Source: Neoconidiobolus thromboides FSU 785 (taxonomy: Eukaryota > Fungi > Entomophthoromycota). From it: a stretch of 63,941 bases of DNA. Below are positions 5,530-14,653 of this stretch, in pieces. The stretch is taken from contig MU626378.1 of assembly GCA_025603075.1 (NCBI GenBank), forward strand, positions 1 to 63,941, written 5' to 3'. Every line of letters starts with the position of its first letter. The stretch's first letter is position 1. Under the pieces are notes generated by a model. It saw nothing but the letters and a program-made list of their open reading frames with translations, made no database searches and was not told where the DNA came from. A program made the position numbers and the translations under genes.

Positions 5530-6381
5530 TTACACTATTTTTTCTACAGTAGTTAATGCAATATACTCTGGTTCTCTCTTAATTAAATAACTTTCATGAT
5601 CTATAAACAAAAGCACTTTCCCATACCAGGTATCTACTAAATAATTTGTAGTCACTGCAAAGTGATAGAAATGCCATACAAAATTGACTAAAAGGAAAGA
5701 TACTACCACATCAATGGTATAGTGATATGAAGAAGCAATTAATCCAATAACGGAAAGAAAGCTGTTTAAAACAAGAAGTGAATTAATTAAATAAGAAAAA
5801 CGCTTAAACAATGGATAATGAATCCAAATAAGAGAGCTAATTGTAAACGCAATAGTATGACCAGAGTACATTAAATCAGCGCACGATTCCATCTTTTGCA
5901 ACATTAAAAGTTTAGCATAGAAAAACACACTTTTATGATCTTTTGGCACACACTCAGTGATGGGTGGTGGCATGAGAGTAGTTAACATGAAAGGAATTCT
6001 TAAAAGATAAAGAAATCCGACAATATAAAATACTCTTCTTAATAGTAATAAAGTTTTTCTACCATTCAAAAACACCCTTAAAAATATTAAAAAAAAGCAT
6101 ATCCCTACCATAATATCCGATACGTTCCTTGGTAATCGTGTTTTTTTAAACGCTGTACTCAAATTTAATAATATTGGATCATAAATAACAAACCTTGTGC
6201 CTGGTGGTGAATTTGCATACGGATTCATTGTATCCGCCATTGCAATCCCTAAATATACTGGGTATACAATTAAAAGCATCCATAAAACCCCAATTAAAGT
6301 AATATAAATCTCTTTTATGTGTAGGTAAGGTCTATAACCCCTTAAATTGACCCAAAAGGAGGATGACGTTGTATCTGACAT
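5530..6381 (-). CDS. Sphingomyelin synthase / IPC-EPC synthase family protein (PAP2_C), intronless
   Basis: About 6 TM segments; D3 motif CADLMYSGHT; D4 motif HYTIDVVVSFLLVNFVWHFYH with the catalytic H/H/D retained. Confidence 0.88.
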   Translation of the reverse strand: MSDTTSSSFWVNLRGYRPYLHIKEIYITLIGVLWMLLIVYPVYLGIAMADTMNPYANSPPGTRFVIYDPILLNLSTAFKKTRLPRNVSDIMVGICFFLIFLRVFLNGRKTLLLLRRVFYIVGFLYLLRIPFMLTTLMPPPITECVPKDHKSVFFYAKLLMLQKMESCADLMYSGHTIAFTISSLIWIHYPLFKRFSYLINSLLVLNSFLSVIGLIASSYHYTIDVVVSFLLVNFVWHFYHFAVTTNYLVDTWYGKVLLFIDHESYLIKREPEYIALTTVEKIV

Positions 6382-8477
6382 TATTAGGAATCGATTTCAC
6401 AACAAAAAAGCAAGCAAAAAAATAAAATTCAAGATCAAGGAAGAAAAACGAGGCCTTTTATATTTTAATTTTTTTGATCAACTTAATGCTTATTTGAGGA
6501 AATCAGGACTGGACCCAAATTTAGTGGGACTTGAGATTAAAGAACAAGTTATCAAGCATGGTCTTATTTGGGTAATGTAATTTATTGGCGATAAAATTCT
6601 TGTTATAACCTTATTTATCTGTTTATTTACTTTTATTAATGATAAAAAAACATTTATATCACTTTATAGTATACAAAATTAAATTATTTATGATATTTAA
6701 ATTTATTAGTTTAATTGATTAATTTTTTTTGGCTTTTATTCAATTTGTCCTTTTTATGCCCATTGCTATTACTTCTTTATAGAATATTGCTAATTCAATT
6801 TAGATGTGGATTGGGCATTTTAATTTTGTATTCCTTAAATTTATTAGGATAGTTTTTTGAAACTTATATTGAACAAGTACACAATTGAAAATGTTAATCC
6901 ACATTTAAACCAAATCAGTACTAGTATATAAAATAGTTTTTTGCATAAATAGGCCCAAGGTTAGTTTATTCTTTTATGTTTCTTGAGTGAGGTTTTTATC
7001 AAAACCCCTATTAGAAAACTTAGTAAATTATCAGTCTTTTTTGGTCTTCAAAATTATAGTGTATTTTTAAACATGATAGTTGGTAGTAGCAGTGTTAACT
7101 AAATTCAAGACATTTGATTTACTTTAAGCAATATAATAAAAGGAATGCAAATAGCATAAACCTCGAAAATTATATAATGTTTGTATCTAAAATAAAGAAT
7201 CAAAGAATATTAGCAATAGAATAGTACAAGACAGAAAAACCACAGTATGCGTTGAATTAATATGAAATAATCAAAATTGAGTTATAGTTCTACACTAAAG
7301 TATATATGTTATTCATTTCTAAAATATCTTATCCTTAGAATTAATGTTATATTATAAATAAAACTTCTTAGTAATAAACTATTTAATCTTAGACTCTAAT
7401 AGAGGATTCAGATTCAACATCTAATAAAATGTGAAATACCAATAATGAATTTCACGGTAGTAATAAATTTTATATGGTTTTGAGTCTTATTAAATTCAAT
7501 AATAACAAATGGATCTTAAAAAACAACTATAAAAGAGTGGAAAAATAAGATTTAATTATTAAGTTTTATTTTAATTAAAGAAAGTTACTATTTAATTAAG
7601 GTTAAAATAAAGAATAGCAACAATGATATCATGTCCAATAGTTCAATTTATTAAGGATTGGGTTCAACTTTATCGGGTAAAAAGCAGGAGAAAGTTTAAG
7701 TATTTAGTCCTTGGCGAATTTTGTATTTGACAAATTTTGCACTTGGCAAGCTTTTTTTAAACCTGGAAAAATAAGCATTTAGCTTGAAAGAGTAAGTTAT
7801 TTTAAAGTATGATAATATTCAATAATAATATTGGTATTAAGAAAGTATTAAAGATAACAAATCAAGTAAGAATTTAAAGAGAAAAATATTACATAGGATT
7901 ATGTAACAGCTTTATTAGTATTTTTACTACTTTGACTTTTTTAATGATAAACTTATAAAAGATCTTGTCTTTTTATTGAAAAACTTACTGGTAAGCTTTT
8001 AAGATTTAAGTTACTTAAAAAATGAACAGCAAATCAAAAGACAAATCTTTTTCGCATATTATAAATAGTATAATATGAACAAAACAGCACTAAACTTTTT
8101 TATATCATTTTATCTTTAAACTATAGTTACTTATGTTTTGAGCTTTATTTTTATAATCAACTATAAAATAAACAACTTATTTTGGATATAAAACATCTCT
8201 ATATTAAGAAATAAGTTATCAATTTTAAGTAAAATTACTCTTAATTTGTAAAACATTTACTAATAAATATGTTCAATATGTTGCTAGTTTGAATATTAAT
8301 ATTCATATTGAATATTGATATTAAAGTTGAGTTTCTAATGAATTCTAAAAAAATCCGAATTATTTTTTCAACTGATACAGAAAAGCACAAAACTGGCTAA
8401 TTTTTATATGATGTATGAACATTAATTTTATTAAAAGAGAAAGAAAAGAGAAATCTAAAATACAACACTACTGTAAG

Positions 8478-9419
8478 TTAAAATGATGCGCTTATAACTG
8501 GTCTTCTCCATCTTAGAGTAAAGGCATAAATATTTAACATAGAGCATAGGGCAATAAGAGCTAAGCACCAGAAAAAGCCACTAATATCTGAAAGGCATCC
8601 TAGAAATGGGACACCAGGTTGAGAGCCTCTTAGAGCTGGAAGAGCAAAAAGCATGGAGGTACCTATTGCTAAAATTGGTGGAGGCACTTCTCTGCGATGA
8701 AAAATAATATCAAAAGTAACAATTGACAAAGATATTGTTAGACCCCACATAACTAGTATTAAAAATATTGAGAATAGTTTTGTTGAGACAGGCTGTTGTA
8801 ATAAAATAACTATCCCTAATGCATTATCACTTGAGTACAATCCTGTAAAATCAGATTTTAAATGCTCAAGCTCTCCAGTGAGTTCTTTGATTGGAGAAAT
8901 ATCGACGGTAGGGTTATATGATTGTATATCTTTTCCATAGGTAATCGTAACTGGTACTAGCTCATCTTTAACCGTACATAAAATGGTGAATATTGCTTTA
9001 AATTCCTCAAAAGGGTAGTCCTTAGAATTTCCACTTAATATTGGAACTTCTAATTTAACAGGTTTGGCAATTTTTCCATCACTGAAAGTTGACTTTTCAT
9101 AACATAAATCACAAGTGATAGTGCTTTTGGGAACTGATAGATTATCACCATATGTGCCAAAAATCAAAGGAATTGCTAGCAAATTAATCTTACCAGCAGA
9201 TGAATCGACGGATTGAAAGCTCACTTTAAATATAATACCATTGAATTCATCAAAATCGGTCCTTCCATCGAGGCTATAAGTTATAGATTCTTCGGCTTTG
9301 TTTATCCTTGTGAGGGCAATAGGGAGTACAATTACACACCATAAAACAATACCCAAGATAGATAATATAATTCTTCTTATCCTAGTATTTCCAATCAACC
9401 CATTAAGTTGCTTCTTCAT
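8478..9419 (-). CDS. DUF4436-like membrane protein, paralog A (intronless)
   Basis: N-terminal TM, beta-rich domain with YPFE, then three TM helices with MLFALPALRGSQPGVPFLGCLSDISGFFW. Confidence 0.75.
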   Translation of the reverse strand: MKKQLNGLIGNTRIRRIILSILGIVLWCVIVLPIALTRINKAEESITYSLDGRTDFDEFNGIIFKVSFQSVDSSAGKINLLAIPLIFGTYGDNLSVPKSTITCDLCYEKSTFSDGKIAKPVKLEVPILSGNSKDYPFEEFKAIFTILCTVKDELVPVTITYGKDIQSYNPTVDISPIKELTGELEHLKSDFTGLYSSDNALGIVILLQQPVSTKLFSIFLILVMWGLTISLSIVTFDIIFHRREVPPPILAIGTSMLFALPALRGSQPGVPFLGCLSDISGFFWCLALIALCSMLNIYAFTLRWRRPVISASF

Positions 9420-9978
9420 CGTTTTGACTTTGTTTTTATTATTAAAGATGAAAGTTGTTAAAAAGATTACTTTAAATTAAGAACTATAAGGCGAATTTAT
9501 TCATAAATTTAATAAGAACAAAGAATTTGTTTATTTCCTTTTTAGATTTAATAATTAATTAACTAATAAATAAGAATTTATACATTCACTAAAATATAGA
9601 AATTTTTTGAATATTTCAAATATTTCAAATAGAATTTTATTATTTGATAGATTAAAAGCCATTATATATTTTCCATCTTAAATATTGTTTAATATATTAC
9701 ATTAACTTAGAATTATATATCAATTAAATAGGTAATATATTGTCTAAAGTAGTGCAAATGTTATTAAGATATGAAAGATAATAAATTTTATAAATAGATA
9801 AAGCAATTGAAAATAACTAGTCTAATTGTTTGTATTAAATCTAATCATAAATATTTAACTTTATGTACTTTTTGTAAAATTAAAATATTTATTAAAGTTC
9901 TAAATAAACGGATTACAGAATTGATTTATGTATATATCGTATTAATTAAGCTCAAAATTAATATTTCTCAATTAAATT

Positions 9979-10959
9979 TTATCTGAAAGCATATACATAA
10001 ATATTAATAACGGTAAAAAGAGCTGAAAGTGAAATGCACCTAAAATTAAGTTAGAATATGAATTTAAAAAAATTAAAAAAATTAAAAAAACATTACCACA
10101 GAAAAGCTACAATATCTGATAAACAACCCATTCCAGGGACACTAGGTTGAGTTGCTCTTAAAGCAGGTAACGCGAATAAAATAGTAGCGCCAAATGCTAT
10201 ACAGCTAATAGGATCTCTTTTATCTACCAATAGATTCAAGGTAATATTAAACAATCCTAGTGTTATACCCCACATAGATAAAGATATGATAAATGAATAT
10301 AATTTAGTACGGTCAGGTTGAACAAACTCAAAAAATATTACAGTTGCATCTTCATGGGGTACAGAATACAATATAGACAACTTCTCATTTTCATCCAAAT
10401 CTTTATAAAATTTTTGATAGGTAGTTCTTTCATAAGTTTGTAACACTTTCTCAGAACTCAACATAAGGTCATACGTCTCTCCTTCTTTAGTGCTGCAGTA
10501 AACAGGCAAGTATGCCTTTAATTTCTCTAATGGATACATTTTCGTAGAAGATTCATCCAAGGGGATTGATAACGAGAAAGCAGTTGAAGTTTTACCTTTT
10601 TCCATGACTAAAGTTTTATAAAAGAAATCACACGTCACAGTTTCAGTTAAACGGTACCTATTATCCAACAATCCAGGTGATGGCAATACGTTTATGTATA
10701 TAGCTCCAGTCTTTTTTGATGTATCTATTGATTGAAAATAAAAATTCATAATTAATACTTTGGCTGCTGGATCACTAAAGTCATATTCATTTATCATTTC
10801 TGTTTTATCTTCGTTTATTGAGTATAGCATATTAAGAGCTACAGGTAAAGTAACAGCACACCATATAATAGCAACGAATAAGGAAAGAACCACTCTTCTT
10901 ACCTTTGTCCTTTCCATTAGATTATTCCAAACATCTTTTAATATATATAACAGTGACAT
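9979..10959 (-). CDS. DUF4436-like membrane protein, paralog B (one intron, 10040-10096)
   Basis: Same architecture with YPLE and ILFALPALRATQPSVPGMGCLSDIVAFLW. Splicing TG|GTAATG...TTAG|G adds CISLSALFTVINIYVYAFR*, which aligns with the end of paralog A. Confidence 0.75.
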
Positions 10960-11443: not shown

Positions 11444-12646
11444 TTATAAGAAGAAACGCTTGCGACTAGTCTCCATATCAGCCTATATTAATATTAGTAA
11501 AATATATGATAAAAATAAAGGTATAAATACATTGAATTTCCAAATAAACTCTCCCTTTTCAGAATCAAAAAGTCCTCTTTGGAGCCATTTCAATTTTAAA
11601 GTAAACCTGGGGCCAATTTCTTGGAGATTAACCTTTTCACCGCTTTTAAATTCATAACTGAAACATATTAGTAAGAATATTCAAAATCCATATAAGAATA
11701 ATAGTGTTACCGATGTCGTCTGAAAAAAATAAAATCTCTTTGATTGTGGAATGTTGCAGTTTGCCTTCCTTCAAATTCCGGAACTTGTGGAAAAAGAGAT
11801 TGAAACATACGCCCTATAGTATGCCCTAAACGTGTATTAAAATTATTAAGGATAAGTTCTGGATTGTGTGAAGTCGAACGTCCATGGTTCTAAAAAATCA
11901 ATTTAGATACTTAAGAAATTAAATATATCCTTACGTGAATTTGTTTGCTCATTATAACGCTAGATAGTCTAAAGTGAGCAGTAGGACCATCTGGGAGATG
12001 AATCAAAGTCAATGAAGTTGGCATTTTTTTATCTTCATTAACAATAATAACATCAGTGTAGTCTCTTTTCTTTGAGAACTCTACTATATGATTAATTTCA
12101 AACTGAATTCCTCTTTTAACGAAAGTAGAATTCGGGAATACATCGCATAACTCATCTGTAAAAGTATACATCGTCTATTTTTGTTAGATAAAGCTTGATT
12201 CAAAAATAAAACTTACCCTTGATGGGCTTTTACTAGTTGTAATAAGAACTTTTGGCTCCAAATTTTTACTAAAATAGTTTGCAAATTCATCAATCTCCTC
12301 TTCTTGTGCGATCTAATTGAATGTTACAATTTATATATACTATTTAAAAATATAGCTCATACATCTTCATCATCTTCCTCAACCATAGTCTCATCATATT
12401 CTCTTTTTGATTCTAAAGTTTGTGGGACATTTTCAGCAAGTCTTTTCTAAATAATATTTAACATAATTCAAACAAAATCTTCTAAATTACTTCTTTGAGT
12501 TCTGGATTGGCTAATTCTTCTTTACGGCGTATTCTTTTAAGCTCTCTCTTTTTTTTATTAGATTCTTGACGAAATTGGGATAAAAGCTCTCTGCGAGCTA
12601 TCTTGTTCTTGATTTCACCACCAGTAAATTTCATCTTTTCAGACAT
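11444..12646 (-). CDS. RPF1: Ribosome production factor 1 (Brix domain), multi-exon
   Basis: [11 protein letters not shown]-terminus; PKVLITTS; [18 protein letters not shown]; [21 protein letters not shown]; spliced C-terminus [10 protein letters not shown]. Confidence 0.9.
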
Positions 12647-13209: not shown

Positions 13210-14653
13210 CTAAAGTTTAGATTCCCCATAAACTTTAATTAATTCTTTGGTACGACTTGAATATTTATCATATTTGGCCTTAATTGAAGGCACTAATTTT
13301 AATTCACTACGAGCAATTTGCATTTGATGGACTGCGTCTGGGCCTAGAAAAAACAAAAATATTAAAAACTAAAATCAAAACCAAAAACAAAAACGAAATT
13401 ACCGTCAGCGATTCTTAAAGTACGAATACTTGCATAAAGCTCAGCTAACGGGGTATCTTGTGAAACACCAGCAGCACCAAAGACTTGGATTGCTTTGTCC
13501 ATAATTTGAAGGCATGAGTTTGGAACAGCTATTTTAGCAATAGCAATTTCTCTCCAAGCCTTCTTAGCTCCAACTTGGTCAATCTTATGTGCAGCATTTA
13601 GAACAAGTAATCTGCATTTTTCAAGCTCAGTTCTACACTCAGCAATTTCAGTTTGGATAAGACCATGGTCAGCTAGTTTTTTACCAAAAGTAGAACGAGT
13701 AGTTGAACGTAAAAGCATAAGCTCTAAACTTCTTTCAGCTGCTCCTAAAGCACGCATACAGTGATGAATACGACCAGGACCCAAACGACCTTGAATAACC
13801 TCAAATCCTCTACCTTCTCCAAGAATAAGATTTGAAGCTGGAACTCTCACATCTTTAAAGTCGATTTCTACATGGCCACAAGGGGCATCGTCATAACCAA
13901 ATACTCCTAAAGGTCTTACTACTTCGACTCCTGGAGTATCTCTTGGAACAATTATAACGCTTTGTTGTTTATGTTTATGTTTGTTGTTTGGGTCAGTTTT
14001 ACCTAGCACTAATAAAACTTTGCAGCGTGGATCACCAGCGCCAGTGATATACCATTTACGACCATTAATGACATAATCATTGCCATCACGTTTAATCACA
14101 GTTTCAACGTTAGTAGCATCAGAAGAAGCCACAGCAGGTTCAGTCATGGCAAAAGCAGAACGAATTTTACCATCTAACAATGGTTGAAGCCATTGCTTTT
14201 TCTGAGCGTCATTACCATACTTTGAAAATACTTCCATATTTCCAGTATCTGGAGCAGAACAGTTACATGCTTCTGGAGCTAAACGAATCGATCTCCCCAT
14301 AATTTCTGACATCACTGCGTATTCTAAGTTTGTCAAATCTGCTCCTTCTGGATATTCTTTTGATAAAAATAAATTCCATAATCCAAGGTTCTTGGCTTTC
14401 TTTTTTAAATCTTCCATAATTGCTGGGTAGGACTAGTTTAGTTAGTAGCTGATAATTGCACAAATTTAAAGTCTTACCTTCCAACGATCTTCGCCATGTT
14501 TAATTTGAGAGTGAAAAATAGGTTCAGCTGGAATACAGTCATTCTAAACATTGTTTCATTTTTATTATTTTCAATTTAAAAATAGATTACCTCAACAAAA
14601 TCCTTTAATGCATCTAATAATAGTTTTGCTTTTTGACTAGGTTCTGGGAACAT
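13210..14653 (-). CDS. Acyl-CoA dehydrogenase (ACAD10/11-like core) with C-terminal PTS1
   Basis: [54 protein letters not shown]. The last intron gives RIADGPDAVH...YGESKL*. Confidence 0.92.

Follow-up and report, generated by a model that had tools for sequence, protein, structure and literature searches.

The window analysed here, a 63,941-nt stretch of Neoconidiobolus thromboides FSU 785 (contig MU626378.1), carries two open reading frames (ORFs) on its minus strand at 8478-10959. A sequence-only reading of this DNA had taken them for tandem DUF4436-like genes and for possible divergent relatives of the pentameric ligand-gated ion channels, or pLGICs, a superfamily that it described fungi as lacking. 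This last premise agrees with Jaiteh et al. 2016, whose inventory, the most complete published, reports no pLGICs in either fungi or multicellular plants (PMC4795631). Both proteins matched Pfam DUF4436 (PF14494) above the gathering score of 23.2 bits (gene 1, 1.7e-20 and 73.9 bits; gene 2 exon 1, 1.6e-8 and 34.7 bits), and they aligned with each other over their full length at 35% identity (E 1e-56). As described below, structure searches and the signature residues of the family support the proposed divergent pLGIC fold.

Two separately transcribed DUF4436 genes

RNA-derived contigs from two studies and four runs (X1-X4, where X2-X4 carry an organism label different from that of X1) were used to define the gene structures. 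They were colinear with gene 1, which has no intron, across 8300-9481. The ORF of gene 2 appears to stop at 10093 because this stop falls inside a 57-nt intron, which has a 5' GTAATG, a branch-point motif CTAAC and a 3' TAG. Two RNA contigs (one of 993 nt) join 10095 directly to 10037, so that 9950-10037 is linked to 10095-10953. Splicing restores the frame and gives a protein of 307 residues with its stop at 9981-9979, and the 19 added residues align with the end of gene 1. No RNA covered 9522-9897 in any of the four runs. Because gene 2 is spliced to a 3' end of its own and no RNA crosses 9522-9897, we conclude that gene 1 and gene 2 are two separately transcribed genes. The intergenic spacer (9500-9999) is extremely AT-rich (GC 0.16) and was untranscribed in all four runs.

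The deposited NCBI model P0001 (267 residues, K502DRAFT_293437) has its start within gene 2 (MINEYDF...) and continues in gene 1 (STFSDGK...); about 1.5 kb, in which the spacer lies, is taken as an intron. The RNA does not support this chimera of the N-terminal part of gene 2 and the C-terminal part of gene 1, which we rejected in view of the separate transcripts, the uncovered interval 9522-9897 and the spliced 3' end of gene 2. Compared with the window, contigs from X2-X4 also show transitions in clusters at 8544-8625 and 10429-10720, with no indels seen; these clusters, present in both genes, are consistent with another strain or allele.

Predicted fold and topology

The structure of gene 1 was predicted with AlphaFold2 as a single chain, from the family alignment and template-free. 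The model had a mean predicted local distance difference test score (pLDDT) of 93 and a predicted template-modelling score (pTM) of 0.83. It consists of an N-terminal helix at residues 12-41 (TM0), nine strands at 45-208 with a short helix at 182-191, and three helices at 211-240, 247-265 and 276-302, equivalent to M1, M2 and M3 of pLGICs. The last strand continues into helix 211-240, with Gln209 at the strand-helix junction. All five motifs listed by the sequence-only reading were located in both proteins and their coordinates checked (Table 1). In agreement with that reading, SVD or SID closes the first long strand, strand 201-208 runs into helix 211-240, FALPALR is followed by QPGVP or QPSVP, and an Asp opens the last helix.

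Table 1. Features of the two DUF4436 genes (residue numbers are those of each protein)
Feature	Position in window	Strand	Basis or remark
Gene 1 coding sequence, no intron, 313 residues; DUF4436, putative pLGIC-like subunit	8478..9419 (including stop)	-	ORF; Pfam; RNA contigs; AlphaFold2
Gene 1 TM0, residues 12-41, N-terminus cytoplasmic, in-to-out	9297..9386	-	AlphaFold2 helix; hydropathy peak 17-35 after RIRR
Gene 1 extracytoplasmic beta-sandwich, residues 45-208, nine strands	8796..9287	-	AlphaFold2; aligned to pLGIC extracellular domains
Gene 1 D72, end of first long strand	9204-9206	-	82% conserved in family
Gene 1 Pro-loop YPFE, residues 135-138, family consensus YPFD	9006..9017	-	Loop between strands 121-129 and 139-150
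Gene 1 Gln209, pre-M1 position	8793..8795	-	Arg in 137/143 family members
Gene 1 M1-equivalent helix, residues 211-240	8700..8789	-	AlphaFold2; VIA-align
Gene 1 M2-equivalent helix, residues 247-265; F258 and R264 invariant, P261 near-invariant	8625..8681	-	AlphaFold2; alignment
Gene 1 M2-M3 loop QPGVP, residues 267-271; P268 99%, P271 95% conserved	8607..8621	-	Alignment
Gene 1 M3-equivalent helix, residues 276-302	8514..8594	-	AlphaFold2; VIA-align alignment stops at GLIC residue 284
Gene 1 D278, opening M3, invariant in family	8586-8588	-	Alignment
Gene 2 exon 1, codons 1-287 and 2 nt	10097..10959	-	ORF; Pfam; RNA contigs
Gene 2 intron, 57 nt, inside M3 helix codons	10040..10096	-	Sequence; spliced out in RNA contigs, runs X1 and X2
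Gene 2 exon 2, remaining M3 (19 residues) and stop	9979..10039	-	Sequence; RNA contig
Gene 2 TM0	10834-10893	-	Exon 1
Gene 2 SID	10723-10731	-	Exon 1
Gene 2 Pro-loop YPLE	10525-10536	-	Exon 1
Gene 2 pre-M1 FVQP	10315-10326	-	Exon 1
Gene 2 FALPALR	10156-10176	-	Exon 1
Gene 2 M2-M3 loop QPSVP	10135-10149	-	Exon 1

Searching the Protein Data Bank (PDB) with this model in Foldseek returned at least 500 matches at E ≤ 1e-3, and the best 50 were all pLGIC subunits with probability 1.0, including GABA-A rho1 (5e-7), GlyR, GluCl, nAChR and ELIC. VIA-align, run independently of Foldseek against 48,161 representative chains, placed pLGICs at all of ranks 1-20 (Z 8.7-10.3): ZAC, GABA-A, GluCl, nAChR, GLIC, sTeLIC, DeCLIC, ELIC and cephalopod chemotactile receptors. 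These alignments comprised 204-223 residues over both domains, from about residue 59 to about 307; for GLIC (Z 9.6), model residues 59-307 lay on GLIC 17-284, a stretch that starts at beta1 and reaches the end of M3. Ranked after the pLGICs were unrelated helical bundles that matched the C-terminal 80-100 residues only. In the AlphaFold database (AFDB), the best 30 Swiss-Prot matches were all pLGICs, and among AFDB clusters bacterial and fungal DUF4436 models led (TM-score 0.6-0.8) with pLGICs next. By language-model features and shape in the ESM Atlas, the nearest non-DUF4436 families were likewise pLGIC clusters.

We found the same with a distant member. The actinobacterial protein P0004, which has the canonical YPFD and Arg, gave an AlphaFold2 model of pLDDT 89.7, and its best 50 Foldseek and top 19 VIA-align matches were all pLGICs (GLIC, Z 10.2). 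Over both models the best Foldseek E values were 1e-7 to 5e-7 and VIA-align Z was 9-10.7 over 205-225 residues. The structural match to the extracellular and transmembrane domains of GLIC, ELIC and nAChR that the sequence-only reading had anticipated was therefore found by two methods and replicated with a bacterial model.

DUF4436 has no experimental structure, and the training of AlphaFold2 included many pLGIC structures, both of which favour the possibility that the real structure differs from the pLGIC-like fold. We consider such an artefact extremely improbable. Two predictors agree (AlphaFold2, and ESMFold for the models in the ESM Atlas), two distant members give the same fold template-free at pLDDT 90-93, AFDB models of other members superpose at TM-scores of 0.6-0.8, and predicted secondary structure puts the conserved motifs at the expected loops.

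The orientation in the membrane was read from the charged residues. Lys and Arg are concentrated ahead of TM0, where the first 16 residues contain five of them, in the short connector HRRE between M1 and M2, and in RWRRP, which follows M3. Applied to this pattern, the positive-inside rule would put both termini in the cytoplasm and, as in pLGICs, the beta domain on the outer or lumenal side, which speaks against a cytosolic position of this domain. TM0 would then run in-to-out, the same direction as M4, so that a replacement of M4 by TM0, effectively a circular permutation, is geometrically possible.

The DUF4436 family

Pfam lists DUF4436 as a domain of unknown function that occurs in bacteria and eukaryotes. 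When 1.84 billion representative proteins were searched exhaustively with HMMER, 1009 fell at E ≤ 1e-3, and a word-index homolog search gave just 4 matches with a single protein and 3 with an alignment. Fungal relatives were found in Entomophthora, Conidiobolus, Basidiobolus, Dispira, Tieghemiomyces, Calcarisporiella and one chytrid. DUF4436 clusters in the ESM Atlas came mainly from Chytridiomycota, Basidiomycota and Mucoromycota, and the bacterial ones from Actinomycetota and Pseudomonadota. The window proteins share architecture, motifs and predicted fold with bacterial members (TM-score 0.79 across 279 residues). NCBIfam gave no match for gene 1 and far-sub-threshold chance matches for two other scanned proteins, and an Aspergillus flavus DUF4436 gene appears in the literature in one expression table only. 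At two loci, from two related Actinomycetota metagenome-assembled genomes, the neighbours were a molybdopterin oxidoreductase, a 2-oxoglutarate oxygenase, a pyridoxal phosphate decarboxylase and a short-chain dehydrogenase/reductase; these two neighbourhoods gave no functional or transport hint.

Some relatives depart from the usual length. Among P0011, P0020, P0023 and P0039, some are much longer (513-2627 residues) or have two to three matched stretches, and in AFDB D8QEF3, DUF4436 lies at the C-terminus of an 881-residue protein auto-named as a family 3 G-protein-coupled receptor. These relatives may have arisen by tandem fusion in nature or may reflect gene models that were merged; in the former case, if real, the fusion would expose the subunit interface. 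Separately, A0A358DCL6, a bacterial membrane protein named DUF2207, matched the gene 1 model (E 2.4e-10, TM-score 0.51, residues 11-252), and Pfam DUF2207_C gave weak matches in three DUF4436 members. DUF2207 may be a further relative with the same architecture of outer domain plus helices.

Conserved residues shared with pLGICs

Conservation was scored in a 74-sequence alignment, taking columns conserved in at least 45%, and wider counts were made on 143 members aligned to the family hidden Markov model. In the former, the conserved columns were D72 (82%), G130, Y135-P136-F137-D138, an Arg at 209, F216, W225 and R243, followed by the stretch LFALPAxRNxQPGxPxxG and an invariant D278 with FFW after it. 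The first position of the Pro-loop was Tyr in 67/74 and Phe in 7/74. In the wider count the Pro of this loop was present in 142/143, with Asp in 126/143 and Glu in 15/143 at its last position, and the pre-M1 Arg was present in 137/143. R243 (81% Arg) precedes M2 and position 252 is Val, Leu, Ile or Phe, where the register of M2 relative to pLGICs is ambiguous by about 2 residues. The motifs of the window proteins are not due to chance, since the columns on which they lie are the best conserved in a family of about 1000 representative clusters.

The pLGIC superfamily has its own signature, described by Jaiteh et al.: the beta6-beta7 loop contributes F/Y, P and D, and a Trp of beta9, the pre-M1 Arg, the M1 kink Pro and the M2-M3 loop Pro complete it, all of them gathered where the two domains meet (PMC4795631). 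The Pro-loop Pro is the sole invariant residue of the superfamily, and the pre-M1 Arg (94%), which is salt-bridged to the Pro-loop Asp, the M2-M3 loop Pro (88%) and the M1 kink Pro (77%) are frequent; in M2, a cationic 0' occurs in 79% and the hydrophobic 9' is Leu in 75%, and the Glu variant of the Pro-loop in 3% (PMC4795631). We found that four of the seven signature residues rank among the most conserved of DUF4436 itself. The family carries the [F/Y]PxD loop, with the Glu variant in the window genes, and the Pro-loop of gene 1 aligned to the YPFD of octopus CRT1. The spacing is also close: from the Pro-loop P136 to position 209 there are 73 residues (GLIC 72, GABA-A beta3 72, 5-HT3 75), and from the pre-M1 position to the M2-M3 loop Pro 59 residues versus 55-57 in pLGICs.

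Sequence searches stayed below threshold. Single-sequence phmmer against the PDB gave only chance matches to light-harvesting helices. The best PDB matches of the DUF4436 profile were pLGICs, namely octopus chemotactile receptors (E 0.21, or 0.07-0.08 with a core-only profile) and GluCl (E 0.4). These sub-threshold alignments were in register, with the family YPFD on the receptor YPFD and the pre-helix Arg on the receptor pre-M1 Arg. At least one database signature also seems to connect DUF4436 with the pLGICs.

Several observations weigh against placing DUF4436 among the pLGICs. None of the 74 members matched Neur_chan_LBD (PF02931) or Neur_chan_memb (PF02932) at E ≤ 10, and with a best PDB E of 0.07, sequence methods by themselves do not establish the link. 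TM-scores to pLGICs were 0.35-0.5, with a root-mean-square deviation of 5-6 Å. As the sequence-only reading had noted, the proteins have an N-terminal transmembrane helix and lack M4: gene 1 ends 11 residues past M3 and gene 2 right after it. The canonical pLGIC transmembrane domain has four helices including a lipid-facing M4 (for example PMC8119899). The window proteins have Gln instead of the pre-M1 Arg (LLQQP and FVQP). No proline occurs in M1 of either protein and none is conserved there in the family alignment, nor does this alignment contain a conserved aromatic residue at the place corresponding to the beta9 core aromatic (W/F/Y). Finally, M2 contains a near-invariant proline, unlike known pLGICs.

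Some of these values could also indicate that a beta-sandwich and a three-helix bundle came together independently, with YPFD and Arg as coincidences: the sequence-only searches are not significant, TM-scores fall below 0.5, and the helical half, taken by itself, scores Z of about 8 against many unrelated bundles. However, the match covers both domains in a fixed geometry and is exclusive to pLGICs among the 48,161 representative chains. The four or five most conserved residues of the family agree with the pLGIC signature in what they are, where they lie in the structure and how far apart they stand (73 versus 72-75), and the best sub-threshold sequence matches are pLGICs, in register. On this evidence convergence is very improbable, and DUF4436 and the pLGICs in all likelihood share ancestry.

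Comparison with known channels

Among known systems, the prokaryotic pLGICs (GLIC, ELIC, sTeLIC and DeCLIC; VIA-align Z 9.1-10.2) resemble DUF4436 in having a beta-sandwich that runs straight into M1-M2-M3, no Cys-loop disulfide, [Y/F]PxD, a pre-M1 Arg, short loops and, at about 300 residues, a compact size. They also share two prolines spaced by 3 in the M2-M3 loop, QPGxP in DUF4436 and, in GLIC, what we take to be LPKTP. Unlike them, DUF4436 has no M4 and carries an N-terminal membrane helix instead of a cleaved signal peptide. It also lacks the M1 kink proline, has a proline inside M2 and is undetected by the Pfam Neur_chan models. Compared with GLIC, the part of its outer domain from beta1 to the Pro-loop is shorter by about 26 residues, as estimated from alignment ranges and numbering.

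The anion-selective Cys-loop receptors (GlyR, GABA-A and GluCl) gave the best Foldseek and VIA-align matches. With them DUF4436 shares an invariant Arg near the top of M2, a loop Pro 4 residues on and an invariant Asp starting M3, presumably the counterparts of R271, P275 and D284 of GlyR alpha1. In contrast to these receptors, DUF4436 lacks the Cys-loop cysteines, the M3-M4 cytoplasmic loop and M4, has no recognisable agonist-site aromatic box and is only 10-14% identical. The nematode Cys-less pLGICs, such as Dirofilaria immitis Q70GM3, likewise have YPFE, with Glu for Asp (PMC4795631). Those proteins have the canonical four helices, whereas the window genes combine Glu and the lost pre-M1 Arg with the DUF4436 architecture.

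A possible channel mechanism

These comparisons suggest how a DUF4436 protein might work. Its predicted layout is a cytoplasmic Arg-rich N-terminus, TM0, an extracytoplasmic beta-sandwich of about 165 residues, and M1-M2-M3. The family retains the residues that serve coupling in known pLGICs, namely the Asp at the tip of the first hairpin, [Y/F]PxD, the pre-M1 Arg and the M2-M3 loop prolines. Because residues of the coupling interface are conserved, we infer that the subunits assemble into a ring, most likely a pentamer with M2 lining the pore. The outer domain would sense a stimulus that opens this pore, and D72 together with the Pro-loop, the junction at pre-M1 and the QPGxP loop would relay the signal, while TM0 would lie at the lipid-facing periphery, possibly at the M4 site. 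We regard pentameric ring assembly, an M2-lined pore, ion conduction and gating in DUF4436 as marginally favoured.

The main rival is that DUF4436 proteins descend from pLGICs in fold and no longer serve, or never served, a channel role, acting as membrane-anchored sensors, scaffolds or regulators, perhaps in another oligomeric state, with the interface kept for folding; convergence and a prediction artefact rank below it. Such a lack of channel function would fit the missing M4 and M1 kink proline, the near-invariant proline inside M2, and the loss in the window clade of a pre-M1 Arg kept by 94% of pLGICs. It would also fit the outer domain, where no conserved ligand-site or pocket residues were visible in the family alignment, and bacterial neighbourhoods that lack a transport hint. 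On the other hand, conservation is concentrated on the coupling interface, M2 and the M2-M3 loop, which is the pattern expected under selection for gating and the one reported for bona fide pLGICs (PMC4795631). The family is also large and has the same architecture in bacteria and fungi. We therefore consider the non-channel alternative unlikely, and the best overall explanation, which we hold to be probable, is that DUF4436 is a branch of the pLGICs that forms gated ring channels. The more specific proposal sees DUF4436 as a pLGIC clade altered by circular permutation, its peripheral helix having moved from a C-terminal (M4) to an N-terminal (TM0) place, and as one that makes functional pentameric gated channels; it is conceivable and somewhat doubtful.

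A paralog clade with changes at the putative coupling interface

The sequence-only reading had pointed to Glu for the Pro-loop Asp and Gln for the pre-M1 Arg in both proteins as a paired change at the gating interface. Both are true departures from the family consensus (Asp in 126/143, Arg in 137/143). N. thromboides has at least seven DUF4436 genes, which form three clusters: one is the window pair, another comprises two or more genes on MU626303, and the third is a divergent pair on MU626432. The N. thromboides paralogs gene 1, gene 2, P0005, P0006 and P0007 made up one clade of a maximum-likelihood tree (support 100/98). Each of the five has the Pro-loop Glu and has lost the pre-M1 Arg, which became Gln in four and Thr in one. 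The sister groups have Glu with Arg (Entomophthora, P0002 and P0003) or Asp with Arg (Conidiobolus), and beyond the five-paralog clade the Arg is missing in only 1/143 sequences. Thus the two substitutions are real, but being common to all members of a single clade they count as one historical event, and Glu also occurs together with Arg elsewhere. Glu probably arose first, before the loss of Arg. With Asp-Arg changed to Glu and Gln, the ion pair at the coupling interface would be replaced by a neutral contact, by which coupling should be altered and need not be abolished.

The sequence-only reading had further suggested that the two adjacent paralogs might form a heteromer. We rejected the tandem pair as a conserved heteromer unit: the nearest relatives of gene 1, P0005 and P0006, lie on another scaffold, and the DUF4436 family shows repeated local duplication. 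Gene 2 has a long branch (1.71). This long branch, together with the closest kin of gene 1 being on another scaffold, indicates that the pair is an old local duplicate and gives no support to an obligate heteromer.

The remaining copies showed some features of their own. A full-length DUF4436 copy lies at MU626303.1 13700-14640 (tblastn identity 71% to P0006, and 40-46% over about 290-310 residues to both P0005 and gene 1). Its annotation covers only a 124-residue fragment (14272-14646), a gene model that is probably truncated. The pair on MU626432.1, at 5905-6803 (-) and 8001-9216 (+), encodes P0003 and P0002, which are 63% identical, stand head to head, and keep the pre-M1 Arg with a Pro-loop Glu. 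Elsewhere in the window, an 86-residue ORF fragment at 11911-12171 (-) resembles, by eye, part of a Brix/Imp4-type ribosome-biogenesis gene with introns and was judged unrelated to the DUF4436 finding.

Implications

A literature search, whose coverage left out most subscription-journal papers, found no published link between DUF4436 and pLGICs. What appears to be new here is a putative branch of the pLGIC superfamily with a one-plus-three helix architecture, present in fungi. If DUF4436 is such a branch, the distribution of the superfamily would be redrawn by about 1000 representative clusters, affecting Zoopagomycota, Chytridiomycota, Mucoromycota, Basidiomycota, Ascomycota, Actinomycetota and Pseudomonadota. 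A family of unknown function would also gain a testable mechanism. Should these proteins form functional gated channels, they would be the first pLGIC-type channels of fungi, widespread across fungal phyla and bacteria. For channel biophysics, they would offer a natural M4-less design of three plus one helices, and the Glu/Gln clade would amount to a natural experiment on the replacement of the canonical gating salt bridge. Together, these features would bear on long-standing questions about the roles of M4 and of the salt bridge in assembly and gating.

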